Assembly: GCF_964194025.1 (NCBI RefSeq)
Contig: NC_134471.1
Coordinates: 62,248,001 to 62,312,000, forward strand
Direction: 5' to 3'
DNA length: 64,000 bases
From: Convolutriloba macropyga
Lineage: Eukaryota
Shown: positions 263 through 61,360 of the stretch, piece after piece
How the letters are laid out: each line of letters begins with the position of its first letter
How positions within the stretch are numbered: the stretch's first letter is position 1
The notes under the pieces: model-generated
Told to the model about the DNA's origin: nothing
Seen by the model: only the letters and a program-made list of their open reading frames with translations
Databases searched by the model: none
Translations under genes and position numbers: made by a program

Positions 263-3200
263 GTAAGTTGTTTCCATGTTAAGATTTTTAAAAAACCGTG
301 AATTATGAAAAGACAGACAGTAGTGACGTAAGCAACCAGTAAAATGTTGGTGGCTATTTTTGCCTCTTGATGTCAGTCATAGAATGACAATTGATTTCAC
401 GTGCAATTATCAAATGGTCCAAAATAAAGTCACCATGGTTTCAGTGGTTGGTGCGTTTTCTACGTTTGTTGGACCAAAAATTCTCAACTTTGCATGTGCT
501 TTCGAATCATTTTCACGAATTGGGTGTTTAGCCGTCGCGTTGTTAACAACTATTTTTGTTTCTGAGGTAAAGTTTGTGTTTAATTTCTATCGTTATTGTG
601 TACATTTTGTAGGTATCTTCAGGAGAGCGGCTTCAACCACACTGCGTTTGTGTTTGGAATCGAGTCACACATGTCAGAAACCAACATTAATGGAGGTCAA
701 GTACCGCCAGGTGCGTGCCAATTTTTAATTAATAGCCGCCCTCATCTTCTCAGCCGGCTATTATAGCGCTCCTTTTTTTACAATTCAATGAATTTGAATT
801 GTATTGGGGCGCTGTCTTTTTTTACGACTCGAAGAGGAGTATTGGAGAAGTCCTTTTTTTAAATCAATTTTTGGAGTGAATTTTGAAGCGGGAAATGAAA
901 CGCGAAAAATTTGGAGTGATTTTGGTGCTGAACAAAGTGAAGAGCGGAGCGAAAAGAGAGTGGTTTTTGATCATACAGCTGTTTTTGAGAGAGCGAGAAA
1001 TTGATGTGTGAAAATTTTTTTTCTAAGCGAGCGAATTTTTTTTTGTTCACGTGCGGCTTTTAAAAGCAGTTTTCTTGCAACTTTTGATGGTTATGAGGTT
1101 TGATTATTATATTGTATTAGTTTTAGGTTTGTTTTGATAGGAATTGAAGGTTTCAAGTAGTTAATTTGATTTTTAATGCTAATTTGGAGGTTTTTGATCA
1201 GTTTTGCTGAATTTCAGACGAAATTTAATGAGTTTTTACCTGTTTTTTTTTGTTTTACTGCTTTAAGTGGGATTTGAATAGAAGCATGTTACTTAAGGAA
1301 TTGTCAGATACCAATTAACTAAAGTTTAGTTGGTATAAATTATTTTTCTCTAAGGAAAAATGACCTAAGAGAAATTTTAAACCATTTTTCTCATTTTTTG
1401 CAGTTTTCTTTTTTAAAAATCTTACACAAGTGTCTTACCCACCCTATTATAACTTGCCCATTGTTTTGCGTGTTTTTAATTGCTCTAATCGCAAAGGAAC
1501 CTTATTCGATTTTAAGTTTTCTTGTGGTATTGAAAAAAACTCATTTAGTTTTTATAGTTTTTTGTTTTTGAATGCCGTTTCTATTCCCTAATTTTTTATG
1601 GCATTTGTGGAGTTTTAGGGTTCATAATAGTTGTTTTAGTTGTTTAGTAATAAGTATGGGCAATTTTGGATATGAATAATTTTTTGGTTTGAGAAATATG
1701 ACAAAAAAATGGCAAAAATTGGAACCATATTTCTTAATTTTTTTTTGCAGTTTTTCGGGTTTTTTTTCTGTTTTTTTTTTTAGAAAAGTTTCTTAAGGTT
1801 TTTGTAGGTTTTTGGAGGTTTTTGATCAGTTTTGCTGATTTTCAGACGAAATTTAATGATTTTTTACCTGATTTTTTGTTTTACTGCTTTAGGTGGGATT
1901 TGAATAGAAGCATGTTACTTAAGGAATTGTCAGATACCAATTGACTAAAGTTTTGTTGGTATAAATTATTTTTTCTAAGGAAAAATGACCGAATAATTGA
2001 GAAATTTTAAACAATTTTTCTCCTATTTTGCAGTTTTTTTTTTAAAATCTTACACAAGTGTCTTACCCACCCTATTATAACTTGCCCATTGTTTTGCGAG
2101 TTTTTCATTGCTCTAATTGCAAAGGAACCTTATTCGATTTTAAGTTTTCTTGTGGTATTGAAAAAAACTCATTTAGTTTTTATAGTTTTTTGTTTTTGAA
2201 TGCAGTTTCTATTCCCTAATTTTTTATGGCATTTGTGGAGTTTTAGGGTTCATAATAGTTGTTGTAGTTGTTTAGTAATAAATATGGGCAATTTTGGATA
2301 TGAATCATTTTTTGTTTGAGAAATATGACAAAAAATGGCAAAAATTGGAACCATATTTCCTAATTTTTTCGTGCAGTTTTTCGGGTTTTTTTCTGTTTTT
2401 TTTTAGAAAAGTTTCTTAAGGTTTTTGGAGGTTTTGATCAGTTTTGCTGATTTTCAGACAAAATTTAATGATTTTTTACCTGATTTTTGTTTTACTGCTT
2501 TAAGTGGGATTTGGATAGAAGCTTGTTACTTAAAGAATTGTCAGGTTAGTAATAAGTATGGGCAATTTTGGATATGAATCATTTTTTGTTTGAGAAATAT
2601 GACAAAAAAATGGCAAAAATTGGAGCCATTTTTCTTAATTTTTTTTGCAGTTTTTCGAGTTTTTTTCTGTTTTTTTAGACAAGTTTCTTAGACTATTATG
2701 ACTTGTATATTGTTTTGAGAGCATCTGGATGCACTATTGTCTGAAAAGAATTTTTCTTTGGTTTTATATGCTTTTGTAATATTAAGACACTTAACTTTTT
2801 CCAGTTTTTTAGTGCAAGTTGTTTTTAAGAGCTTTTTCATAATTTGGCCTCAAGTTTTTTTAAAACATTCACCTTAGTGGTTTTAGTAAGTACTAGTTGT
2901 TTTGATGAAGAAATTTTGGCAGAGATAGTTATTTCGGGATCACAAAATGACAAAATTTGATCAGATTTTTTTAATCATATTTTAACAGATTTGATTTTTT
3001 TTGGTTTTTACGTTTTTGTTTTATGGTTTGGTTTCAAGAAAATCAAAAATTAGTGGAGGCAATTTTTTTTGATAGGTAGTTGGATGGCGATTAAATAAAT
3101 TTTCACTTCGAGTCGTATCCGGAATTCTTCCGGCTAGGTTTTTTTTAAGATCTGTTCACACATTTTCATGATTTTTGAAGTCAAATTGGAGTAGTGATTT

Positions 3201-6200
3201 TGATCACGCCGAAACAGGAAGTGGAGCGAAAAAGCGAGTGGTTTTTCGTTGTGAATTTTTTTGGCTCTAATTTTATGGTAGAGTGAGAAAACGGTGCTCG
3301 AACAGAAATTCGCTTTCTCGCTAGTGGTTTTTTGTTCACATGCGACAATTTCACTTTGACTTTTACTGTTTTTTCGGTTTTTTTGGATCAGAGTTATTTC
3401 TAAATGGTTTTCCCAATCCATTCATAGTTCATTATAGGCCTAGTTTTTATGTCTCAACCAATTTTCCATTTCTCGCCAGGGGTTTTTGTCCACATGTGGC
3501 ATTTTGGCGTTTATTTCTTTTTTTTAAAATTTTTTTGCTGTGATTTTTTTGAAATGGTTTTCCCAATTCACTCATAGTCCGTTCTAGGTCTAATTTTTTG
3601 TTAAGTCAATGAAAATTCTTTGAATTGTACTTCAGGACTTATCCTGCTATGTTTTTTTACTTCGTCGAACTTTTTTTCGCTTTACCTTTTTGCCGCTTTT
3701 TCGACATTTTGCGTGAAATTTTTTTGACTTCTCTAGGCTACTTTCACTCTTCTATCATTCTGCTCAAAGTCCTTTTAAACAGCCGCTCAGCAAAGTAATT
3801 CAAAATGAAGAGAGTCAGTATAAAAAATCAAAGTCAGAAATAGAAACGGGATAAACCCATAAAACCCATTTTTAGATGCCCGGTACTTGAAATTTGTTCT
3901 CATAAGTTTTAGTTACTATCTATAATGCTTATTAGTATTGATACTAGAGCCTGTAGCCTCTCCTTGAGAGACAGGAGTATGTTCAACTACGAAATGACAT
4001 CAAAATAAATCGCACTTAAAAATGTTTTCGTACAAAAATTAATATTTGTTGATATTTTCTTTTCTTTCAATCCCAATAGAGTTATGGGAATCAACGGCGG
4101 CTATTTTCCGGCAATCTGCCGGGTGTGTTTGTTATTTGGAAAGGTAATAAATGTTCATAAGAATTGTGACATATCTGAGAAGTATGTGCAGAAATTCTAT
4201 TGGAAACTTTTTTCATACTTTTTTGAAAATTGTTTTCCAGCTTGTAAGGAATTTCACTGACGATTAACATAAGATGCTGCGTGAAGAACGTCTTTAACAG
4301 CAATGTTTTGCCAAATACTCGAAAACAAGTCATCAAAATGGTGCGTAAATTGTTCATGTTAAAATAGGTGCTCTGATCAGCATAATTCAGAAGGGAATGC
4401 AGTATGTGGAGGCAGAGATCAGCACGAATGAGGATGGAAGTATAAATGACAATCTGCAGTTGACTGATAACCTCTCACTCATAGATGCAGTCATGCCTGA
4501 CATTGTGCAACAGACCAGAACAGCTGGAAATCAGGTCACAATTTAACTTTTCTACCTAAATATAACAGTTTCATGGTAAATTATGAGGGATATATTCTGG
4601 CTCGTCCTTCCCCAGTACCGTTTATCATCCCATTATCAATTCTTAAATGCTCGCGAACGAAGTTTGAAGCAATATTGTAATCGTGTATCCCGATTTTTAT
4701 GCCAAATTCTTGCTTGACCGCTTTTAATTTTTCGCGTGATTTATCAGGCTTGACATCTTGATTTTTGTGTAATCATAATTGTGCTCTCATTCAGATTTTT
4801 AAGCAGCTGAACTCATTTGGAGCCAATAACCACTAAGAGTCAAATGGAAAGATTACCGAAAATGGTTTTTTTCAAATTGCCGAGAAGCGATAGCGAGGTT
4901 ATCATTGGTTTGGTCTCGTGTCTTTTTTTTTACAATTCAAAGAATTGGAACTGTATTGGCGCGCTGTTTTTAGAGAAATATTTTTAATTGCCTGGCGCTG
5001 TCTTTCAAGACTTGTGAAAACTGTTTTTACTTCATGTAGTGATTGGAGTCTCCCCCCAAAAATAAAGCAAGCGAAAAAGCAAAATGCTTTTAACTTCAAA
5101 TTGCTTTTACAGTTCGAAAAGGGTGTTTGTAAAAATTGTTTAGTATAGAGTTATTTTTTCGTTCAAATGCATCAATGTAATTGTTTTTAGTGGTAAGAAA
5201 TGAGGGGTCTGTCGCCCACTTTTTGTTTGACTCATTTCAAATATATATGTATAATACATGTTGTGGCTTTGTGTGGCACAGCGAAGCCTTAGGCTTGATT
5301 TGGAGCCATTCCGAGCTCAAAAGACTAAATTTCAAAATGAGTCAAAAAGTGGGCGACAGACCCCCCATTTCTTACTACTGTTTTTATTTTTTCATTTATA
5401 TCGCATCAATGTGCAAAAGGGTGTTTGTAAAAATTGTTTAGTTTAGAGTTATTTTTTCGTTCAAATGCATCAATGTGATTTTTTTAGTAGTAAGAAATGA
5501 GGGGGTCTGTCGCCCACTTTTTGACTCATTTCAAATATATATGTATAATACATGTGGCTTTGTGTGGCACAGCGAAGCCTTAGGCTTGATTTTGAGCCAT
5601 TCCGAGCTCAAAAGACTAAATTTCCAAATGAGTCAAAAAGTGGCCGAGAGACCCCCCATTTCTTACTACTGTTTTTATTTTTTCATTTATACCGAGCAGA
5701 TGATTTGCTAATGGCTTTCAATAACTATTCCCAGTTAATTCAAAATAAAGTTGCTTTGTTTTTCATTGAAAATTCTTTAATTTTTACTTCAGGAGTGCTT
5801 CGATTTCAATTGCTATTGAGCTTCAGTCTATCACGCTGGACGTCGCGGGTTCGAACCCCTTACTGGTCGAAATTTTTTTAATTCTTAAAATGCGAACAAT
5901 ATTTAATTAGTCTGGCTATAACTTTTCTCTGAAAACGTTTCAAATTTTGGCACAAGTATGTTTTGGATTGCACTTTTGAACGCTAATGTGTAAAGGGTAA
6001 CTTCAGGTTATAAATTTTTTGTTTTTCTGCGTATTTGCTTAGCCAAGTAAAGCATATACGCATTCTCGATTAATATTTTATTTTTTTACAGCCACTTTTT
6101 TTTTAATTGTGTTTGACAAAAATATGCTTGTGAAGAGCACCGAAAAGTGTCTTTCGATATTTTATCATGTTTCTCTTTCGGATTTGTTTTTCTGAATTTG

Positions 6201-32436: not shown

Positions 32437-33121
32437 ATTTCCAATTTTAGACAACGATGTGGCTTAGCATTTGCACGAGGGTCTGAAAAACTACTAGCCG
32501 CTACACAAATTGGAAGACATGCCATTTGGCCTGCGGATATCAGGATGATAAGAACGATGTGCTGATGACGAATCAGACTAGTATAATTTAACTAGTGTTA
32601 TTAGAAGTTTCATTATTTTTTTCGGTCGTGATAGATTCATATGAAGCTGAGGACGCTGAGATATGGCCAAATTAGCTAGTAGTTATAGCCAATTAATGTT
32701 TTAAAGCTAAGAGACGCTTCTTTCCCCGCTTAGTGTGCGCTGGTAGTTATCATGAATTGTGGTCTTCGAGTACTTATATTTGCTTGAGTGTCGGCTAATT
32801 CGTATGTAAGGCCAATTGACCGGCCATGAATTACATCAACATTTTTTCTATACATTGACAGAATTAAAATCAACTTTTGATACCGGGGGCAAGAACCTTT
32901 CATTTAGCGAAGACTGCAAAAAGCGGCTGCACAATTAGTTCAACTATTGCTGACGCAGATGTGAGCATCTAAATGCTACTCATCTATGTGAGTCTTTCAG
33001 TGCGACTTACATGTCTCTCATATTTGCATGTCTGCTCTTACTCTATATATAGATGAGATTTCATTTTTTTACAATCCAAAGAATTTGGATTGTATTGGTG
33101 CGCTGTTTTAAGATGTCTTTA

Positions 33122-33331
33122 TAGGTGCTTCCCTCTCCACTTGTTAGTTATTTTGTGACTGGGCCGTCTTTACACTGTCTGGAGGGGAACAGCTTGGAGT
33201 GCAGCATCCGGCTACTCATCATCCCTTATGTTTCGACATACATCCATCGTTGCCGGATGGTGCACACGGTTCTTATATTTTACTTTAAGAAATAGATAGA
33301 AAGAAGATAAGAAAGTCAGAGAAAGAAGAAA
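33122..33331 (+). mobile_element. 5'-truncated copy (3' UTR + purine-rich tail) of the CRE-like element, with ~15-bp TSD
   Basis: Homologous to 38620-38837; flanked by TTTAAGATGTCTTTA (33107-33121) and TTTAAGATGTTTTTA (33332-33346). Confidence 0.75.
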
Positions 33332-34501
33332 TTTAAGATGTTTTTACATTTTTTTCGGATGACTTTTTAGCTTTCGAAACAGGATAAACTGGTTAAGCTC
33401 GGTTTGCATTAGGTTGCAATAGAGGGCCTAGGCGGACTTTAGTTGTCTTTTAAGTGTTTAATGTACAGAAGTTGCTAGCAGTGTCTCAGTTCAAGGTGAA
33501 AAGTCCCTCGGAGTTTTTGGCCACAAAATTGTCCTGTTTTTCATACTTTTTGTCTATTTTTGAGATTTTCCATAAACGAGTGTTCAATTGTCATTGGCTA
33601 AAGCTCCTAGTGGTCGTCTGCCAGCTAGAAAAGCTTTTCAACAATCTTTTTTGAGGTATCTGTTTTGGTAATCCGTACTTAATTACAAAAATTCAAATTT
33701 TATGGAATCTTTTTGGTTTTTTTTTCATGTTTTTCGATCTTTAGGAGCCAAAGAATCTTTAGAGCTTGAAGATGGGTTAACTGGTAGTCGTAGGTGACAA
33801 CAAATTAAATTTGATTTTTTAAATGTGAGTTTTTTGGTGTTTTTTGATCTTGAGAGGCCAATGAAGCTTTCTGTGGGCTCGAAGAAAGGATACTGGATAA
33901 TCTTTGTGGCTTTTTTGTTTTGAAGTTATGACTCTGTGAAACTTTAGCAAACTTTTATCAAACTTTTTCAATTTTTCATGTTTGTTAAAGATGGCTGTCA
34001 TTTGTGGAGTGTTTCGTTTTCTAAGGACCAATGAACTTTTTTTACGGGTTTTAAGATGATTACTTTTGTGACAACTAAATTGTTTCTAAAATATTAATCC
34101 GGGGAGTTTATGCAAATATTTACTAGAATTTGCTATTTTTGAAAGTTTGTCATTTGTTGGGTTGTTCGATCTTTAGGGGCCGGTGAATCTTCTCGAGGGC
34201 TTGAAGATGGGTTACTGAATAGTTTTTTGTGACAACTGAAAACCTCAGAAAATATTAATGTGAGGAATTTTAGTAATTTTTCTTAAAAATTTGCCCTTTT
34301 TTCATGCTATTTAAACTTCATTCTCTTTTCAGTTTTTCAATCATGAAACTTTTCCAAGCTTGTTTCTGTGTTAGTTGATAAGTTTTTGGCGTAAATTTGG
34401 TTTTCTGAGGACATTGGCTTAAAAATTTTGACGACTTTTGTCATTATTACGAATTTTGACAATTTATTACGAATTTTGTCATTTTTTCCTCTCTTTTATG
34501 T
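33332..34501. repeat. ~1.17-kb direct repeat, left copy (X)
   Basis: Colinear with 38838-39997 from TTTAAGATGTTTTTAC to TTTTCCTCTCTTTTATGT. Confidence 0.9.
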
Positions 34502-34663
34502 CTAATTCAGCCTAATTGTTGTGATAAACTTATTAAATAGAACCTCCGAACAAATTTACCTCCGCTGTGTTTTCAAATACGTATGCGCGCTGGGCTGAAT
34601 CAAACCTACACCTCTCCAGGCCACCCCAGCCGTAGGCGAGTGAACCAATCTCCCACCCCGACT

Positions 34664-34888
34664 CATCACATCAAGTTGTATCATTCCAACTGATTTCGTT
34701 TTTAGAACAATATCTGGTGTTTTTGAATGTTAGTAGGCTCCGTGAATGGGATGTTTTGATGACAATCATCTTCCTTCATCACATCAGGTTGTGCCATTGT
34801 AACTGATTTCATTTTTAGAGCAATTTCTTGTTTTGATTGTTAGCAGGCTCCGTGAATGGGACGTTTTGACGCCAACCCTCTTCCCTCC
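34664..34888 (+). repeat. ~112-bp tandem repeat x2 in the 5' region of the CRE-like element
   Basis: TCATCACATCA.GTTGT...TGTTAG.AGGCTCCGTGAATGGGA.GTTTTGA is repeated. Confidence 0.85.
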
Positions 34889-35425
34889 AGCTGCTCGGAC
34901 TTGGTCTTGGGTACTTCTCGTACCAATTATATAGACGAGGGTCATGTACAAGGTTGTGTACACTACTATCGAGGCGCTAAACTGCTAGATCTTTGTGATG
35001 TTATCAATCAATACCCAAATCAGAAACTGAACACTGTTGTAGTAATTGCTGGCTTCAATGATCACCCAATTAGTTTTCAAACTTTCATAAAACATTGGAA
35101 ATTCCTCACTCAGCTCGTTTTTGTTCAATTTAGCCCAAATAATTTGATTGTTCCCAAAGTTATACCCACCAGCTTTAATCGCCTCATAAATAAGAAAATC
35201 AGTGCCCTTAACTACGTTTTGTATAATTATATTAATTCTTGTGCCTTAAAGCTGTTTATTGTTTCACCCTCATTTAAGAATGTTCTTGAACCTAACCTGT
35301 TCTGTAAAGACACCGTGCTTTTCTCCTTTCATGGAAACCATGTTTTAACTATTATTCTGTTTAACAATATTCAATACTTTAAATATCGTTGCTGCTATTA
35401 CTCTCCTGTAATTAACGTAATCTAG
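34856..35425 (+). CDS. SGNH/GDSL esterase-like ORF1 of the CRE-like element (189 aa)
   Basis: Block I LVLGTS, block II RGAK, block III VVVIAGFND, block V KDTVLF (DxxH with H->L, one base change CAT->CTT). Confidence 0.7.
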   Translation: MGRFDANPLPSSCSDLVLGTSRTNYIDEGHVQGCVHYYRGAKLLDLCDVINQYPNQKLNTVVVIAGFNDHPISFQTFIKHWKFLTQLVFVQFSPNNLIVPKVIPTSFNRLINKKISALNYVLYNYINSCALKLFIVSPSFKNVLEPNLFCKDTVLFSFHGNHVLTIILFNNIQYFKYRCCYYSPVINVI

Positions 35426-35467
35426 TCCTCCTCAGTGCAGCCTTCCCGACTCCTAGCCGGTAGCCTG

Positions 35468-38400
35468 ATGGCTGATTAAACCCATTGTCCACTCTGCAAG
35501 GGTCCCCTACGTAGGGGAGGCGTGTGGTGTCATACGTGTTATAAATATTTTTACGTGAAATGCAGTGGCCTAGCCGCAGCGAAAGAGTGGAACGAAAACT
35601 TCAGCTGCAAAAGCTGCTCTGCGGTCACCGCAGCCACCGAAGCAGCAATCGCAACGCCGGCACCACACAATGATTTGACCGTTCCCGACACTGCACTTAA
35701 AAATCCTGCAACATCGCAAGCCCCCGAACGTTCCGTCGCCGCACCATCGGATAATTTTTGGGATAACTTCCAGCCTCATCACACGGTAACAGTGCGCGAA
35801 ATAAACCGCGAGGTCGTCACATGGAAGCCCTCGTTCTTCACGCTAAGTAAGAACAAGATAGGGGAACAGTTCGCCGAAGCGCTTCACACTGTCCTCTCCC
35901 CGATTGCCGTAAACACGGATAGATCCGATATATTTCTGACCCTCTGAATGATACTTCCGCACATAACTCTCAGTCGAACAAAGAACACGGACGATGGATA
36001 GATCTATAAGACCATCAAGCGTGGACTGCGTGCATGGCACAGCTGCAATTTCTCAGAACTGTTCTGTGAAGCGAAGGCAATCCAAATGAGAATGAATTCA
36101 AGGATTAAAACGCAACACTCTGACCTCAAGATGTTCAACAATTTCATTTCTTGTGGTAAGATCAGTAATTGCTATTCGCGTTCTTTTGGATGAGCATAAA
36201 GGCGGTGTGCTCGCACCTACTGATCTCATAGACGGTAGACCGGTCCTCGAGATTTTACGCGACAAACATCCTGAAGGGCAACCCCTGGAGCCCAACTCCA
36301 TTCAGAGACAACATCCACGCACGCTTCCCTACCATCCCGCTGTTTTTGACAACATAAGTGCTAGGCTTGTCCGAAAGCATGCAATGAAGACTCATGGCAG
36401 TGCTGGGCCTTCAGGTCTTGATGCCGATGACTGGCGTACACTGCTTTTGTGCAGACCTCCACGAACCTGTGCAAGCTTGTTGCCAATTTTGCTAAGAGGC
36501 TGGCCACGTCCATATTACCACCAGATGATTTGATTGCATACAATGGTTGTCAACTAGTGGCTCTGGATAAATGTCCAGGTGTGAGACCTATATTTATTGG
36601 GGAAGTAATGCGTCGTATCACCGGACGCATAATAGTCGACTGCATCAAGCAAGATTTAACATCCCTCGGTGGAAACATGCAGCTGTGCCTGGGCCAGAAA
36701 TGCGGCATAGAACATGCCATACATTCGCTTCGCCACAGTTTTAATGATCCCGAAAACGAAGCAATTCTACTAATTATGCCAAAAACGCATTTAATGTGCT
36801 CAATAGACGAACAGCATTAGAGAACGTGAAAGCCTTATGCACATCATTGCATGTTGCCTCACAGAATTCCTATAGCCATCCGTCTCATCTACATGGGCAA
36901 GTCGACCATTCTGTCCCAGGAAGGTACGTTACAAGGTGATCCCCTTGCGACGGCAATGTATGGAATCGCCATCCTACCCCTAACATAAAGACTTCACAAT
37001 GACTCCTTGACACAAAAATGGTATGCTGATGATGGTAGCGTCGTCGGTAAGTTGAAAGATATCAGGGCACTCTTCGACCAGCTCACTCAGCTTGGACCCA
37101 AGTAGGGATATTTTGTCAATCCTCCGAAGTGTCAGCTGATAATTAAGCCAGGAGGCGAGCGTCAAGCGTCAACTGAGTTTGCAGACACAAATGTGCAAGT
37201 CACGCTGGGCGCTCGAGTCCTGGAATCAGTTATCGGTGGCTCTGAGGCCAGTAAAAATTTCCTGAAAGATGCAGAAATTTAATACAAAAAAGTTTGGACA
37301 GACTTGGTCAATTTGCTCTCACCTCTCCCCAGAATGCCTATGCATGTTTGACGAAGGGGGTTCAACAGAAGTTGAGCTTTCTCTCGCGTACTACACCCTC
37401 CATGGACGCGGTTCTGGACAAGGTAGAGGAGCGGCTTGGCCGAGTCATACCCAACATCGTCGCAAAGAAATAATCCAAGAAGAAATAGAACTTTTTTCTC
37501 TCCCTCTTAGAATGGGTGAGCTTAACATCGCCCTCCCACAAAATCTTCATAAAAATCTTGAGAAATCAATTGAACTCTAACTCCATTGGCGTCATTTAAT
37601 AATGATTCATTCGAAATTCAACAAAGTGAATTAGAACAAACCAAGATCAGTCTCAGACAGAAAGCAGACATGTAACGCCAACGCATCTCAAAAAAATCCA
37701 GAATCAAAAACAATCTACCAGAAATGAGGTATACCATCCAGCTGGCCTCGGAGAAAGGAGCATCTAGCCGGCTTAACGCGCTTCCGTTATCAAAACATGG
37801 TTTTGAACTCACGAAGACAGTTCCGTGATGGAATAGCACTTCGCTACACCTGGGAAGCGAAGAACACACCAGCTATATGCCCATGCGGGAAAGATTTTAG
37901 CCTCACGCATGCCCTTCATTGCGCCAAAGGCGGGTATACGCATCTACGACACAACGAAATCAGAGACGTGTTTGCAAACCTGATGGATGACGTTTGCCAC
38001 GATGTCCAGATAGAGCCAAAACTTCAGACGCTCGATGGAAAAATTTGCTCGAGTAATTGCACCACTACTGATGATGACGCTCGACTGGATATCAAGGCAA
38101 ACGGTCTGTGGGGCTCCCGCTTTAATCGCACTTTCTTCGATGTGAAAATTTGCAACCCTCACGCGAAGAGCTGCCCTAAGACCATAAAAGATACATACAA
38201 ATATTACGAGAGCATCAAGCGAAATAAGTACGAAGAGCGAATCCGCGAAACTGAACGCAGCAGTTTCAACGCACTGAGTTTTGCTTGCTCGGGTGGTGCT
38301 GGGCCATCAGCATCGCGCGTTATGAAACAACTCGCAACCAAGATCCGCGAAAATCGCGGAGAGCCGTACGCCGACTCTATAAGTTACATCCGAATGAAAA

Positions 38401-38519
38401 TCAGCTTCGCAATTCTGAGGAGCTGTGTTCTCTGCTTGAGGGAATGTTGCGCCCTCAAGCCTCGTGTTCTCAGTGAGAGTTCGATTAGTACCGTCGTGGA
38501 GGAGGGAAGGCTGCACTGA
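35468..38519 (+). pseudogene. ORF2 of the CRE-like element (PHD + RT + zinc knuckle + RLE), frameshifted
   Basis: ATG at 35468 in frame with CPLC...WCHTCYKYFYVKC...FSCKSC. ORF fragments at 35522, 36153, 36449, 37269 and 37797 chain into one polyprotein. Confidence 0.85.
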
Positions 38520-38837
38520 GTGTTTGGCTGCTTTACTTTATTCCTTTGCCCATTCCTTGATATCCTATTTTTATTTCAATCCTTCCTTACCAGTTCCTTT
38601 TGTGTGCCATTTATATGAATAGGTGCTTTCCTCTCCACTTGTTTGTTATTTTTGTGACTGGGCCGTCTTTACACTGTCTGGAGGGGAACAGCTTGGAGTG
38701 CAGCATCCGGCTAATTGCTACTCATCATCCCGTATGTTCCAACCTACATCCATCGTTGCCGGATGGTGCACACGGTCCTTATATTTTACTATAAGAAATA
38801 GATAGAAAGAAGATAAGAAAGTAAGAGAAAGAAGAAA

Positions 38838-39997
38838 TTTAAGATGTTTTTACATTTTTTTTCGGATGACTTTTTAGCTTTCGAAACAGGATATACTGGT
38901 TAAGCTCGGTTGGCATTAAGTTGCAATAGAGAGCATAGGCGGACTTTAGTGGTCCTTTAAGTGTTTAATGTGCAGAAGTTGCTAGCAGTGTCTCAGTTCA
39001 AGGTGAAAAGTCCCTTGGAGTTTTTGACCACAAAATTGTCCTGTTTTTCATACTTTTGTCTTTTTTTGAGATTTTTCATAAACGAGTGTTCAATTGTCAT
39101 TGGCTAAAGCTCCTAGTAGTCGTCTGCCAGCTAGAAAAGCTTTTCAACAATCTTTTTTGAGGTATCTGTTTTAGTAATTCGTACTTAATTACAAAAATTT
39201 GTAGTAATTTTTGCGAGTTTTATGGAATCTTTTTGGTTTCTTTTCATGTTTTTCGATCTTTAAGGGCCAAAGAATCTTTAGAGCTTGAAGATGGGTTAAT
39301 TGGTAGTCGTAGGTGAAAAATTGAATTTTAAAATTTAAATGTGAGGTTTTTGGAGTTTTTTGATCTTGAGATGCCGATGAAGCTTTTTGTGAGCTCGAAG
39401 AAAGGACACTGGATAAATTTTGTGGCTTTTTTGTTTTGAAGTTATGACTCTCTGGAACTTTAGCGAACTTTAGCAAACTTAGTCAATTTTACATGTTTTT
39501 TAAAGATGACAGCCATTTGTGGAGTGTTCCGATTTCTAAGGACCAATGAACTTTTTTTACGGGTTTTAAGATGATTACTTTTGTGACAACTAAATTGTTT
39601 CTAAAATATTAATCCGGGGAGTTTATGCAAATTTTTACTAGAGTTTGCTATTTTTGAAAGTTTGTCATTTGTGGGGTTCTTCGATCTTTAGGGGCCGGTG
39701 TATCTTCTCGAGGGCTTGAAGATGGGTTACTGAATAGTTTTTTGTGACAACTGAAAACCTCAGAAAATATTAATGTGAGGAATTTTAGTAATTTTTCTTA
39801 AAAATTTGCCCTTTTTCATGCTATTAAAACTTCATTCTCTTTTCAGTTTGTCAATCATGAAACTTTTCCAAGCTTGTTTCTGTGTTAGTTGATAAGTTTT
39901 TTGCGTAAATTTGGTTTTCTGAGGACATTGGCTTAAAAATTTTGGCTTTCTATCCAATTTATTACGAATTTTGTCGCTTTTTTCCTCTCTTTTATGT
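38838..39997. repeat. ~1.16-kb direct repeat, right copy (X')
   Basis: Diverged copy of 33332-34501, directly abutting the element tail. Confidence 0.9.
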
Positions 39998-40419
39998 GCA
40001 AGCCGAATTCTGCTGACCTGTAATTTAATTATTCTCTAGATCTTTGCAGGGATTAATTGGCCTTGACGACAAATATGTGAATATTTCGTAAGCAATAAAA
40101 GACAACTTTTGAAGTTTTTTGTCTATATTGTCAATTTTCCTGAACTCAAGTTGTCAATAAAGATTTTTTTGACCTTGTTGCTGGCTTCTTGCGCAAAGTG
40201 AAAGAGTAGTGTTTTTCTTTTTGAAGAAATTGACATCAGAAAGTTGAAGCGTATCTGCAGCGCATTTGATAAAGAACGGTATTTAACGTTTTTATCCTAG
40301 ATGTGTTTGTTTCCTAGAAGTGTTTACGCAGTTGGGAGTGTTATACGTTCTGAATAGCACGGCCTCACGAAACAAAAATCACAGTCACTCGAATGATTCT
40401 CTGTTTAAGTGCACTCCTT

Positions 40420-41472
40420 AACAATCTGGACACCGACACTCTTGCAACAATCTATTTGGACTTTGAAGAAGCCTTCGATAGAGTTTGCCGGGGGAAGTTA
40501 ACTGAGAAATTACACGACTATGGTGTAATGGGAGGAGCTCTGGAGTTGATTGAAAGCTAACTGCAGGGACGGAAAAAAAGTGTCCGAATAGGAAACGCAG
40601 TGTCATCTGGGCTCGATTTTCAAAGTGGATTGCCACACGGCTCAGTACTAGGCCCCTTCTTTTCGTTCTTCATCAACGATCTGCCTCAATGCGTAATGTC
40701 TGATTGCTATGGCTATGCTGACGACTATAAAATTGTTGGCACCAACAAACGTCAACCGCCGTTGCGAAAAGGCGTTGAAAGCTTTCTTCACCATCAAAAA
40801 GAACGTTACAAGAGCAATAGCCTGGCAAGCAAAGAGAAATCTGTATCGGAGCTATATCGTACCAATCCTCTCATACGGGTCAGTTCTCTGGAAATCAAGC
40901 GAACAGGGTCTAAAGAAAGTTGAAGCAATCCAGATGAAAGCCAGGAAATGGATTTTGTCCACCGGACAACTGGCATACACAGACAGACTGCGCAGGCTAG
41001 ATATCCTTCCTCTGTCGCTCTATCATGAGCTCCACGTGCTATTGTTTTTTCTGGACATTTTCAGTGGCAGATACATTGATTGGCAAAAATTCTTACAGGT
41101 TACCGAACAGCTTGACCAGAACACAATAACGGGAGATACAAGACTTTTCAAGACCAGGAATATCTTGAGACAAACAGGAGAGCGACTTCTGGACGAAAGG
41201 CGTATACCTTGCGAACCTCATTGGTCGAAAAGTTGGTCAAAGTTTCGACTCTATTCTAGCCGCAAGCAGAAAGAAGAAGATAAAAGAGTTCTACACAAGT
41301 TTCTTCACCGAAGTTCACGATCCTGAAAATGTGTGCACACAGAGATTGTCTTGTCTATGTGCACTTTGCAGAAATCTTATTAAGCTGAAATAAACTCTTT
41401 GACAAAACAAACTCCGGAAACATTACTTCCCTTGGATGCTGACTCTAAATTCTATTATTATTGTTATTATTT
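40420..41472 (+). mobile_element. Truncated, internally deleted CR1-group LINE
   Basis: IYLDFEEAFDRV, SGLPHGSVLGP..FINDLP..YADDYK, LYRSYIVPILSYGSVLW, YTDRLRRLDILPL; (ATT)n tail at ~41454-41472. Confidence 0.83.
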
Positions 41473-42495
41473 CGAATGACGTTTGTTTTCTAAATTTGTG
41501 AAACTATTTTTCCTTTTGATTCGTAATGATCTTTTGGTTTGCTGGTCAGATGGTTGACTGCTTAGTTTTTCTTTTATTTATTTGGATTGTTTTTCAGGAC
41601 TTGCTATGTTTTTCATTTACTGCTAGAGCATAAAAATTTTGATCTATTCTGTTACCAAGCTTAGTGGGATTATAAATCTTACACCGATATGCGCACGTGC
41701 TACTTTTTAACGTGTTATGTGACAATATATAAAGTTATAAATTGAAGGCATAAAAGCACTGGAGGGGAGAACAAAATAGATCGAAACTTATATGCAGGTT
41801 AGTACTCTCTCTGATTGTCTTCCTTTTAAAATATAATAGCCTCAACGTATCTCGAATAATATTACCTTTCATGCTAAATTAGGTTTCTGTATTTCGCCCT
41901 GGTTACACAACTTAACAACATCTCATTTTTAACAATGCTGATAGCTTACTTTAGTCATTTTATATGATGCCAGTTATTGATAGAGCCAAATAACGTTACT
42001 TGTGAGATATACATCTCTGGTTGCTATTTTAATTAACAGTCTTAGATTTGGCCTTACAGTAGCAGGCAGGATGTTTCCAAAGTACAACTATAGTAAAGCA
42101 ATTATATAGCTGCTAAAACGGGAAAATTAAATTAGTTTAAAACTTTTTAGGTCAATTAAGCCTTTTTGATCAGTTGACTCGTTTTGAAGAATATCACGCC
42201 CCTATACCCTTTAGACTGAAAATTTAATGCTTGTATCAGAAGCGAGGTCAAAAAAATTTTAGGTGGTGGTGCGGACTTCCTGGTATTGATATAACGGGGT
42301 GCAGTAGTTCTTTGCCCCAATTGAACTTTACGAGACCATAAAGTTAATAAATGCGCCAGTAGTATTCAACTGTTCTGGTTTCTCCGTTTTGAAAAACCAA
42401 CTATCATACCCTTTCACATTAGTCTGTTAGCAAAAGCAAGTGAGATTAAACTGCGTATTTATAACCATATTCCAGAGGCACAGATTGTTTCAGAT

Positions 42496-49576: not shown

Positions 49577-52500
49577 ATGAAGTTTGGCGATTATGTCTTC
49601 GAAATCGATGCCAACAACGTCGAGGTAATACAATCACCGGGCGAGTATTACAATGCAATTTTATCAAATATAGAATCCGCGAGGAATCGGATTGCTTTGT
49701 CCTCTCTGTACCTTGGCACGGAACCGAAAAGCGAAATGATTCCCAGAATGATTGGTCAGAAACAAAAAGAAAACAGTTCGTTGATAGTTGACCTACTTTT
49801 CGATTACAACCGATCGATGAGGTTGAAAGAAACTACGGAAATGTTTGCAAATTATATCAACTTAAATGATGCAAATTGTTATTTATATCATTCGTCTTAC
49901 CTCAACAGACATAAGAAATCTTTAGCACCGAATCGCTGGAACGAAATATTTGGTGTCCTGCATATCAAGTCATATATTTTTGACGATGTTTGCATTCTAT
50001 CGGGTGCTAATTTGAGTGAAGAGTATTTTAACAACCGTCAAGATCGCTATGTTGTTATTCGAGATCGAAAACTATGCGACTTTATGCATGAGTTGATCAG
50101 AACTATTCAGCAGTTCTCTTTTCGTTTGAATCAAGATCGGTCAACATCGATGAAATCCACGATTGCGTTGCCATGGAAACAGCCAAGACGGTTCAGAAGG
50201 CAGAGCTCAGTCATCCTCAGGAAATATATGGACGGAACAGAGTTCAATAGAAAAGTAGGTAATTTTTCTACTCATTTAACCAAGATTTTTTTCATTCTTT
50301 GGATCATATGGTATTTTTTCTCCTGACCACTTTGGCTCGTTGGAATCTAATAATTGAGAAAAATTTGAATACATTTGAACACATTGTAAGAGATGCTTTA
50401 ACCAGGGCGTCAAGACTAGAATGGTTGGGTTGCTATGCGATGTCAATCAATCATTGAAGTCAGCGTTTTTGAAGCTATGCTTCTTAGTTAGCAATTTCCT
50501 GTTTTTTTTTCAATGCGTTCTCGAGCTATTTTTCTAAGCTTTTAGTCACTTTCTTTTTGTGTTTATGATTTTCTTTACTGTTTCTAGAACCAAAAAACTG
50601 ACGAACTTGAGTTCAGTTCTGACACAACAATTGAGGCTTTTCTGCAAGCTCCTGAGCAGAAGATGGACACTTACTCTCGAAGCATTGAACCTTTTATGCA
50701 ATCTATTCTGCCCTCAGAGAAACTTTACCTTGCTTCCGGATATTTCAACCTCTCCAATAGTCTTGCCTATGCAATGTTGGCATGCAAAGCTAAAAGTGTG
50801 GATATTTTGGCGTGTTCCAGAGAGTGCAATGGGTTTAAAACCGCCAAGGGGCCTGCCGGATATGTACCCGATATGTACGAGTGTGTGCTGCATAAGTTTG
50901 TGCAAAGGCTCGAGGAGCGGAAATCGAAAAAATGTAAGTTTTTACTCACTCTCAAAGTTTGTAGAAATTATTTGGGCCGTGTTGGTCTTTTGAGTGATTG
51001 TGCATCTGGTTGATTTGATTTTTCGTACGGTTTTTCAGAAGCGGATAAAATTTTTGGTTCTTTGTCCTTGAACATTTAGCTGGTTGTTCCAAAGAGGTTT
51101 GAAAAAAATGGGAGGAGGTTATGTCAGACCCTCTTTTTGATTCCTGTCAAACGAATTATGTGACAATTAGTAGTTGCTCACGAACCAAGTTTGAAGCAAT
51201 TACTGTGAACGTGTTGGTCTTTTTTATGCAAAATTTTCGCTTGACCGTTTTGAATCTCTCTCATTTACAAGTGTCAGCTGCTGAATTCAAGTGGTGGAAA
51301 TTCAGTACTAAGAATCAAATGAAAAGTGCAACGAAATTGGAGTTTTATTTTTACTTTTAATTTTTTTAGTGGTTGTAGTGGTATACAATAACGTCTAATG
51401 ACGTCATCTGAAGCCCCTTAGTGATTTTAGTTTTTCCCCCAAACCAAAGTAGGAATAATCAGGTAACGCACGGAGGGCATTAAGCTCTCTTACAGCCTTT
51501 CGGCTTACTCGACTCTAAGTATGCTTTTCGCCGAAACTGTTTTGGAGACATAATTTATGGTATTAAGGGCGACAGATAGTTAATATTATGAAAAATATTA
51601 GAAAAAGTATTTTGAAGTTTTTATTTCAATATTATGGAGTTGCTTTTGTTTACTTTGGTCCTGGGCTCTACACTCTACTGCAACAGTTACGATATGTTTT
51701 TCAAAATAAAGAAAGGTTTCACTTCGTTGTGATGCTTCAGAAAATAAGTGGCTGGCTACATATTGTTTTTTGGCTTCATATTGACTTCTCTTGTTTTTTG
51801 CCTTCTCTTCGATGTTCTCTTAGTTTTTACAATTCAAAGATTTTGACTTGTTTTGAGGTGTTGTCTTTTTTCGCGACTCGGAGAGGAGTTTTGGTTGAGC
51901 GTCTTTTTTATCGATAATTTATTGGAGTGTATTTAAAACAGGATGTAAAAGCCGATGCTGCACGTGAAAATCGATTGTTTCGATCAGACGGCTGATTGAA
52001 TTGAAGAGAAGAGAAGAGAAAAAGAGGGAGGGGAGAAAGATTTTCATTTCATGCTGCAAGAAAGTAGGCATGAAAGGTTTTGCTGCGCAAGCGAAATTTT
52101 TCGAAGAAGTTTTTTTTTTAATTTTTATCTTTATTTTTTGCTTAAACTAGTTGTTCTAAATCATGTTAACAAGTAATTGTTTGTTTGAGATTTTTTGACC
52201 ATGTCAATCATACAATCATAAATTTAGATGCAATCTTGAGCTATTATGATTTCGACTTTTTGGACGCTTTTTAGCAGTTTTTGTACTATTTTTCACGCTT
52301 TTTTGTGTCCCGGATAGTTGTTTTACTTGAAATTAGTATTCATGTGGTTTTCACGTTCTTTTATTTTTGTTGCTATATCTTGAAGTTTGTTTCAGTTGAA
52401 AACACTCAATTTTAACAATTCTTTCCCATAGTTTTTTTAAAATTGTTTTCACCAATTACTATTTTTTGCCTTTCAGAATACTCTTGCATCTGCAATAGTA

Positions 52501-60367: not shown

Positions 60368-61360
60368 TATAGCTGCGAAGCTGAAAGCTGAGTGGAGCTA
60401 TACTGCGATGTCCTTGGTTTTTACAATTCAAAGAATTTGAAGTGTATTGGGGCGCTGTCTTTTCTGTTCACACATTTTCATGATTTTTGAAGTCAAATTG
60501 GAGTAGTGATTTTTGGTCACGCCGAAACAGAAAGTGGAGCGAAAAAGCGAGTGGTTCTGCGGCGTGAATTTTTCGCTCTAGTTTTAAAGTAGATCGAGAA
60601 AACGGTGTTTGAACAAAAATTCGCTTTCTCGCTAGTGGTTTTTTGTTCACATGCGGCAATTTCACTTTGGTTTTTACCGTTTCTTCAATCTTTGGATTGG
60701 ATTTTTTTCTAAATGGTTTTTCCAATCCATGCATAGTTCATTCTAGGCCTAGTTTTTTGTTAGAATCAAATTTACATTTTTCGCTAGTGGTTTTTTTGTT
60801 CTCGCTAGCGGCATTTTGACATTGGTTTTCTGTTTTTTTATCTGATTTTTTTAGAAATGATTTTCCCAATTCACTCATGGTACGTTCTAGGTCTAGTTTT
60901 TGGTCAATGAAAATTCTGTGAATTGTACGTCTGGATTTTTCCTGCTTTGTTTTATGTTTCCTGTTTAGTCGTCTACGCTCTTTTTCGTTTTACATTTGTT
61001 CACACAGCAAAACTGAAAATGTCAAATTTTCTGAATGACTTCTTCCTCTCACTAACGGCTTTTGCGCGCGTGACGTCATTTTTCTCTCTCTCTAGCAAAA
61101 GATTTCAATAAAATGACTTTTGTTCTTTAAAACTTGAGTCTAATTTGAATTAAATTAAGGTCAGAAGAAAGGACCCTACTGAAAGGGCTTCTGTGCAATG
61201 AATTTTAAGCCTTTTTAGTGTATTGCTGAATGTTTTTCCCATAGTTTTTTGAACGGCGTCGATACCTGTTTCAACATTATCTGTATCTGTTTCTATCTCT
61301 ATTATATGGTACTCAAGTCTATTCTTTCGCAGCTATACCGGCAATCTGCCGGCTATGTTT
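60368..61360 (+). mobile_element. HINE-like family B, compact complete copy
   Basis: subTIRs TATAGCTGCGAA (60368-60379) / TTCGCAGCTATA (61326-61337), hairpin CCGGCA-ATC-TGCCGG (61338-61352), end CTATGTTT. Confidence 0.78.

Follow-up and report, generated by a model that had tools for sequence, protein, structure and literature searches.

Tandem duplications of 1-10 kb at insertions of the human long interspersed element (LINE) L1 have been termed 'large TSDs' (target-site duplications) (10.1101/2024.12.14.628481), and L1-bridged duplications have been documented in tumours (PMC7058536). HINEs, in turn, have been described by T-run boundaries, a palindromic 5' subterminal inverted repeat (subTIR), a 3' stem-loop, central repeats and a lack of coding capacity (PMC4067079). 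Here we analyze a locus at which a LINE and a HINE-like repeat meet, in a stretch of 64,000 nucleotides from Convolutriloba macropyga (NCBI RefSeq assembly GCF_964194025.1, contig NC_134471.1, positions 62,248,001 to 62,312,000 of the forward strand), which is referred to as the window and whose own numbering is used throughout. With moderate confidence we read the locus as a full-length LINE sitting between two ~1.2-1.4-kb copies of its target, in other words as an oversized TSD, which arose through two successive retrotranspositions in one HINE-like repeat. A giant TSD of this sort is of a kind already known from L1.

Sequence reading, combined with a repeat finder and pairwise alignment, resolved the locus into the order L, t, X, full-length element, X' and D:

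33065-33121, + strand: L, the 5' end of the HINE-like host repeat, with a T-run, a palindrome with an 11-bp stem and TGCGCTG; its last 15 bases (33107-33121) are copy 1 of a 15-mer; the motif abuts X-like sequence in other copies of the family, and a hairpin is predicted
33122-33331, + strand: t, a 210-bp 5'-truncated LINE 3' end with a conserved part (33122-33286) and a purine-rich tail (33287-33331); it lies between 15-mer copies 1 and 2, its own 15-bp TSD, and has paralogous empty sites
33332-34501, + strand: X (or T), on the left, one of two copies of a 1,170-bp segment from inside the host repeat, beginning with 15-mer copy 2 and stopping at a point internal to the repeat; 94.3% identical to X' in substitutions, with exact run-specific contig matches
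34502-38837, + strand: the long copy, a 5'-complete but degenerate LINE of 4,336 bp with two open reading frames (ORFs); other genomic copies start at the equivalent of 34501-34509, and the ORFs were mapped
38620-38837, + strand: t', the long copy's own 3' end and duplicate partner of t; from ~38768 on, its variants and its purine tail are shared with t and with no other copy
38838-39997, + strand: X' (or T'), the right copy of the duplicated host-repeat interior, starting with 15-mer copy 3; aligned to X, with an X'-specific contig (38864-38999) in four runs
39998-40308, + strand: D, the intact 3' portion of the host repeat, which carries on from X' without a break, just as it does in paralogues; family homology stops at ~40300-40310

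There are three copies of the 15-mer, TTTAAGATGTYTTTA, at 33107-33121, 33332-33346 and 38838-38852. The duplicated unit comprises the element tail together with X, ~1,380 bp in all: block A (33122-34501) corresponds to block A' (38620-39997), and the two are 94-96% identical if substitutions are counted and differ by 11 indel events as well. Substitution divergence is roughly uniform along the block, amounting to 4.3% for the tail and 5.7% for X. The similarity of X and X' lies far above chance, other relatives of X in the genome being at most 84% identical. Not a single base separates repeat from element at either junction, 34501/34502 between X and the element or 38837/38838 between the tail and X', so that the direct repeats abut the element as those of a TSD do, and the region 32900-40420 is free of Ns. 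A preliminary description of the window had placed a short copy with a 15-bp TSD at 33122-33331, which sequence reading and alignment bear out. It had further placed a long copy next to the same 15-mer, within a target-duplication-like repeat of ~1.17 kb; this layout stands, with the corrections that the end of the tail was one base off, the true span being 34502-38837, and that the duplicated block is really the tail plus X.

The 45-nt purine tracts of t and t' are identical at 44 of 45 positions, the two tails share a private variant in the last conserved bases, and both carry a C at 33262 (equivalent to ~38768) where all of 28 other copies have a T. These 28 copies come from a genome search with t, which yielded 525 candidate places, and were examined together with the 1.5 kb to either side. 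Their tails are each of different sequence or absent, and the genome search returned no third copy with the tail of t and t'. Since the tails of other copies all differ while t and t' have the tract and private bases in common, the two tails descend from a single insertion. The near-identical purine tail and the private shared variants likewise show that the shared junction is one junction duplicated, rather than the product of two independent hits. The final 70 bp or more of t', together with the junction and X', are therefore a copy of t, the junction and X.

The same survey speaks to the target preference of the family. The 3' flanks of the 28 other copies are unrelated, with homology to the long copy ending at the end of the conserved 3' untranslated region (UTR) or within a purine-rich tail, and X follows the element tail in none of them. 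Clear TSDs were seen in 11 copies; they measure 12-20 bp and all lie at different AT-rich sequences. A 100-bp probe across the junction between tail and X found a full match in the genome only at the two places of this locus, while nine other scored copies of the host repeat matched it only from the first base of X; no element was found at the 15-mer site of other host-repeat copies with this probe. The preliminary description had suggested a sequence-specific element that targets a site within 'HINE-B', and had proposed to collect the 3' junctions of the family, naming unrelated flanks as the outcome that speaks against specificity. Such flanks are what the 28 copies have, and with their differing TSDs and a junction confined to this locus the suggestion is refuted.

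X is a member of a non-coding repeat family for which the genome has at least 566 candidate places, and the other members are 66-84% identical to X. In many of these members, among them six aligned paralogues, the motif at 33065-33121 runs directly into sequence corresponding to the start of X, and the 15-mer is single there. These six serve as empty sites for t, paralogous rather than orthologous ones, and they confirm the assignment, made in the preliminary description, of the sequence left of the TSD to the conserved 5' motif of the host repeat family. At the other end, more than 20 paralogues align unbroken across 39997/39998, up to a common end at ~40300-40310. One host repeat accordingly spans 33065 to ~40308, with X as its interior present twice. 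Because paralogues are uninterrupted both across 39997 and at the 15-mer site, X is duplicated target and not a second repeat copy or UTR. The breakpoint at 34501 (equivalent to 39997) falls at an arbitrary spot in the interior of the host repeat, with 311 bp left to the repeat's 3' end. The repeat shows a 5' T-run, a palindrome with an 11-bp stem, a foldable 3' end and degenerate internal repeats; TRF found no clean tandem array in it, and we call it HINE-like because the subterminal complementarity between its 5' and 3' ends extends over 7 bp only. Four further copies of its 5' terminal motif occur in the window (770-818, 4925-4974, 51824-51855 and 60418-60461), as does a further piece of the family at ~41450-41610, and the HINE-like family is thus locally dense.

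The left end of the long copy could be placed by comparison with its relatives. With probes 34440-35440 and 34452-34551, other genomic copies begin to match at window positions 34495-34513, mostly at 34501-34509, the 40 scored ones among them at 34495-34509, and with the same probes the junction of X and element (34501/34502) is unique in the genome. The long copy is thus 5'-complete, with 34502 as the canonical 5' end of the family. Since 34502 coincides with this run-off 5' end, the 5' junction is best understood as RNA-templated: an internal point of the host repeat joined to the first base of the element is characteristic of run-off reverse transcription of a full-length RNA, and a canonical 5' end is an unlikely spot for a random DNA breakpoint or a mis-assembly. 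With X internal to the host repeat and flanking a 5'-complete element base to base, the giant TSD that the preliminary description had listed among its options for X and X' is the best-supported reading.

Given this anatomy, with its single tail origin, a breakpoint inside the host repeat, a 5'-complete element and no target specificity, the most economical history of the locus has two events. In the first, the 210-bp 5'-truncated t would have inserted near the 5' end of the host repeat by ordinary target-primed reverse transcription, generating the 15-bp TSD, a length within the family norm of 12-20 bp. In the second, a full-length RNA of the same family would have been reverse-transcribed from a DNA 3' end inside t; annealing of the old copy to the homologous 3' UTR of the RNA would explain why no new tail was made and why the private variants of t were inherited. 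The 5' end of the run-off cDNA would then have been joined to the top strand where this was broken at 34501, 1,170 bp downstream, and fill-in would have duplicated the interval between the breaks. This interval comprises X and 70 bp or more of t, for a TSD of ~1.24-1.38 kb. The order of the events, priming inside t, and the making or use of the breaks by the element machinery are what we infer; the breaks may have come from the element nuclease, or they may have existed beforehand and been repaired with RNA or cDNA. The ages agree in so far as half of the divergence between A and A' (2.7 ± 0.3%) is compatible with the distance of the element body from the majority state of nine copies (4.1 ± 0.6%).

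A second long duplication was found within the family. At L030 (L030:1232-2368; G000 C9:39,220,165-39,221,301) the LINE is present as a 5'-truncated copy, with a direct repeat of 272-274 bp and 93% identity on its two sides, which starts directly after the 3' end of the element and stops 65 bp before its 5' end. The 65-bp gap is filled with snippets of element sequence, as after template jumps, and the repeated sequence has no other occurrence in the genome. L030 represents a long TSD of unique DNA, which shows that the family can produce oversized duplications. At another truncated copy, L023, a repeat pair (96-364 and 2893-3161; 269 bp, 98.9% identical) lies 2.8 kb apart around the copy and runs to the end of the locus; it was not counted as a TSD, as it does not abut the 3' end of the element. 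Direct-orientation pairs of element 5' regions, with near-identical match statistics, were seen at C1:3,260,192-3,269,796 (5,144 bp apart), C10:40,008,504-40,015,236 (2,691 bp apart) and C1172:9,844-13,047 (2,268 bp apart); judged from coordinates alone, these may be further tandem duplications of element plus flank.

Several points weigh against a giant TSD. A duplication of 1,170 bp (up to 1,380 bp with t) compares with the usual 12-20 bp in 11 copies and would be a rare outcome, the 272-bp case being the one other long example among ~20 assessable copies. A second event beginning within a relic of 210 bp seems coincidental, unless priming is helped by homology. Upstream of 33262, t and t' differ only by changes private to one copy, and the left 140 bp of the two hold no informative sites; in this part, the derived sites thus fit priming inside t and block duplication by another route alike. 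Finally, no contig among those listed bridges 34501/34502, as Logan unitigs break at the high-copy 5' end.

A rival explanation is a duplication at the DNA level unrelated to the insertion, in which a full-length element would have inserted first at the 15-mer site, and the upstream t-X would have been added later through tandem duplication plus deletion, template switching or unequal exchange. Such a history would predict the uniform divergence of tail and X, as expected of a block duplication; the shared tail and its variants fit it equally well, and the structure is bounded by the 15-mer, in keeping with the long copy as the original insert. It needs, however, exact breakpoints at 34502 and at 33121/33122 with no base lost or added, and the order t-X-body-t'-X' is impossible from one simple tandem duplication. 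L030, moreover, ties a flanking duplication to an insertion. We regard a DNA-level origin as rather unlikely.

An assembly artefact, with two diverged haplotypes, one holding the short insert and the other the long one, joined in tandem, appears distinctly improbable. Reads were checked through short Logan contigs from four runs on two samples, all of a single study that is possibly the source of the assembly, and the key junction at 34501/34502 is the one that no listed contig bridges, both of which leave room for a mis-join. On the other hand, unitigs specific for A and for A' occur in both samples, free of mismatches and similar in depth, and contigs bridge t and X (33187-33386) as well as body and t' (38520-38660). 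The 5.7% substitutions and 11 indels are high for alleles, the assembly holds no alternative haplotig with X or the junction, and a mis-join would not be expected exactly at the canonical 5' end of a LINE. Short and long alleles of one insertion would themselves require an exact deletion.

As in LINE 3' transduction, non-element DNA follows the element tail in two places, and the same sequence does so each time, which would also be seen if X were a long 3' UTR of the element itself. Both possibilities had been raised in the preliminary description, and neither survives the comparison: X follows the tail in none of the 28 other copies, so that it is not part of the UTR, and X' has no terminal tail or TSD of its own and passes seamlessly into D, the 3' part of the host repeat, as in paralogues. 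In contrast to transduced sequence brought along from elsewhere, the DNA here is local target, and X' is closest to the adjacent X and not to another locus. We thus give transduction or an extended UTR very little credence.

Two independent insertions by a sequence-specific endonuclease recognizing the 10-mer TTTAAGATGT inside HINE-B would account for the same 3' junction appearing twice and would suit a C-terminal domain with motifs of the restriction-like-endonuclease (RLE) type, but are scarcely conceivable given 28 other copies with unrelated flanks and TSDs, no other HINE copy with an element at the site, two tails that match at 44/45 positions where tails are otherwise insertion-specific, an X/X' identity of 94% against at most 84% elsewhere, which indicates one repeat copy duplicated and not two, and the lack of a HINE 5' motif upstream of the long copy.

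The long copy itself is degenerate, with many stops and frameshifts. Its parts can be listed as follows:

34663-34887, + strand: ~110-bp repeats of the 5' UTR, from the sequence
34856-35425, + strand: ORF1, the upstream ORF, from the ORF map
35480-35944, + strand: PHD-like Cys/His finger, from a sub-threshold Pfam PHD match
~36100-37580, + strand: broken reverse transcriptase (RT) region with YADD, from motif and ORF map
37728-38519, + strand: C-terminal ORF with CCHC and a putative PD-(D/E)xK block, from columns conserved in homologues; the 3' UTR and the tail come after it

In the C-terminal ORF, the columns C..C..H..C, RHN, E, D and D-x-K are conserved in 22 homologues, and these motifs fit a putative RLE. 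The predicted order of secondary structure elements, alpha-beta-beta-beta, fits the fold as well, although the AlphaFold model is poor (pLDDT 43). A Pfam search of 13 ORF pieces gave only the sub-threshold PHD match, sequence searches of the PDB with the C-terminal ORF and with a profile of 22 sequences gave no usable match, and a feature search of the ESM-Atlas returned weak leads only (scores 0.81-0.88). The 5' UTR holds two tandem units of ~113 bp that are 83% identical (34663-34887), and many genomic copies are ~117 bp shorter in this region than the long copy, so the number of units varies. In the 3' UTR, a (TA)n microsatellite is expanded at 38609-38619, with equivalents in L007, L022, L029 and L030. 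At least five copies (t, L012, L015, L018 and L028) are 5'-truncated within ~12 bp of the (TA)n point, which suggests either a stop of reverse transcription or a short mobilized 3' module of ~170-210 bp. In L017 (L017:1-1659), the 3' half is internally rearranged or duplicated, with the equivalent of 37586-37802 re-inserted after 38449 and internal repeats of 97-98% identity.

If the giant TSD is accepted, the locus provides a clean, base-resolved case, from outside the mammals and the L1 clade, of a germline kilobase-scale duplication at a LINE insertion, with a second, 272-bp case in the same family. It also removes a false lead, as site specificity of one transposon for another does not exist here. 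Annotation pipelines built on the assumption of short TSDs would mistake a locus of this sort for two insertions or for site preference. More tentatively, and as a conjecture that we rate as possible but on the doubtful side, the breaks for first and second strand might be only loosely coupled in this family, such that a measurable fraction of insertions duplicates hundreds to thousands of bp of target, and the 3' ends of dead copies may be reused as primers. If this were true, the LINE family would repeatedly give rise to local segmental duplications in the germline of this genome.

Amongst known systems, the host repeat resembles HINEs and other DINE-1-like non-autonomous derivatives of Helentrons (PMC4067079; for oyster HINEs see PMC7492417) in being non-coding, ~1.5 kb long and present in hundreds of copies, as well as in its T-run, palindromic 5' terminus, degenerate internal units and hairpin-capable 3' end. 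It differs from them in the 7-bp complementarity of its ends, and at this locus it is a passive target and not specifically recognized. The LINE, judged by its motifs, is similar to the site-specific RLE retrotransposons (CRE1/CRE2/SLACS/CZAR, R2 and NeSL-1): it has an N-terminal zinc finger, an RT and a C-terminal block with CCHC and PD-(D/E)xK-like motifs, and it leaves no room for an APE domain. In contrast to these elements, it has a separate upstream ORF1 and lies at unrelated AT-rich sites with TSDs of 12-20 bp and no recurrent target.

The closest parallel is provided by the large TSDs of human LINE-1. In both cases a retrotransposed copy lies exactly between two direct, kilobase-scale copies of the target, with the 3' junction at the site where the first strand would be primed and the 5' junction at a distant second break. 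The event described here differs in being fixed and old, in the germline of an invertebrate, and in involving a LINE without a poly(A) tail that carries RLE-type motifs, rather than an APE-type L1. In addition, part of the duplicated target in C. macropyga comes from an older copy of the same family, whose 3' end was seemingly used as the primer.

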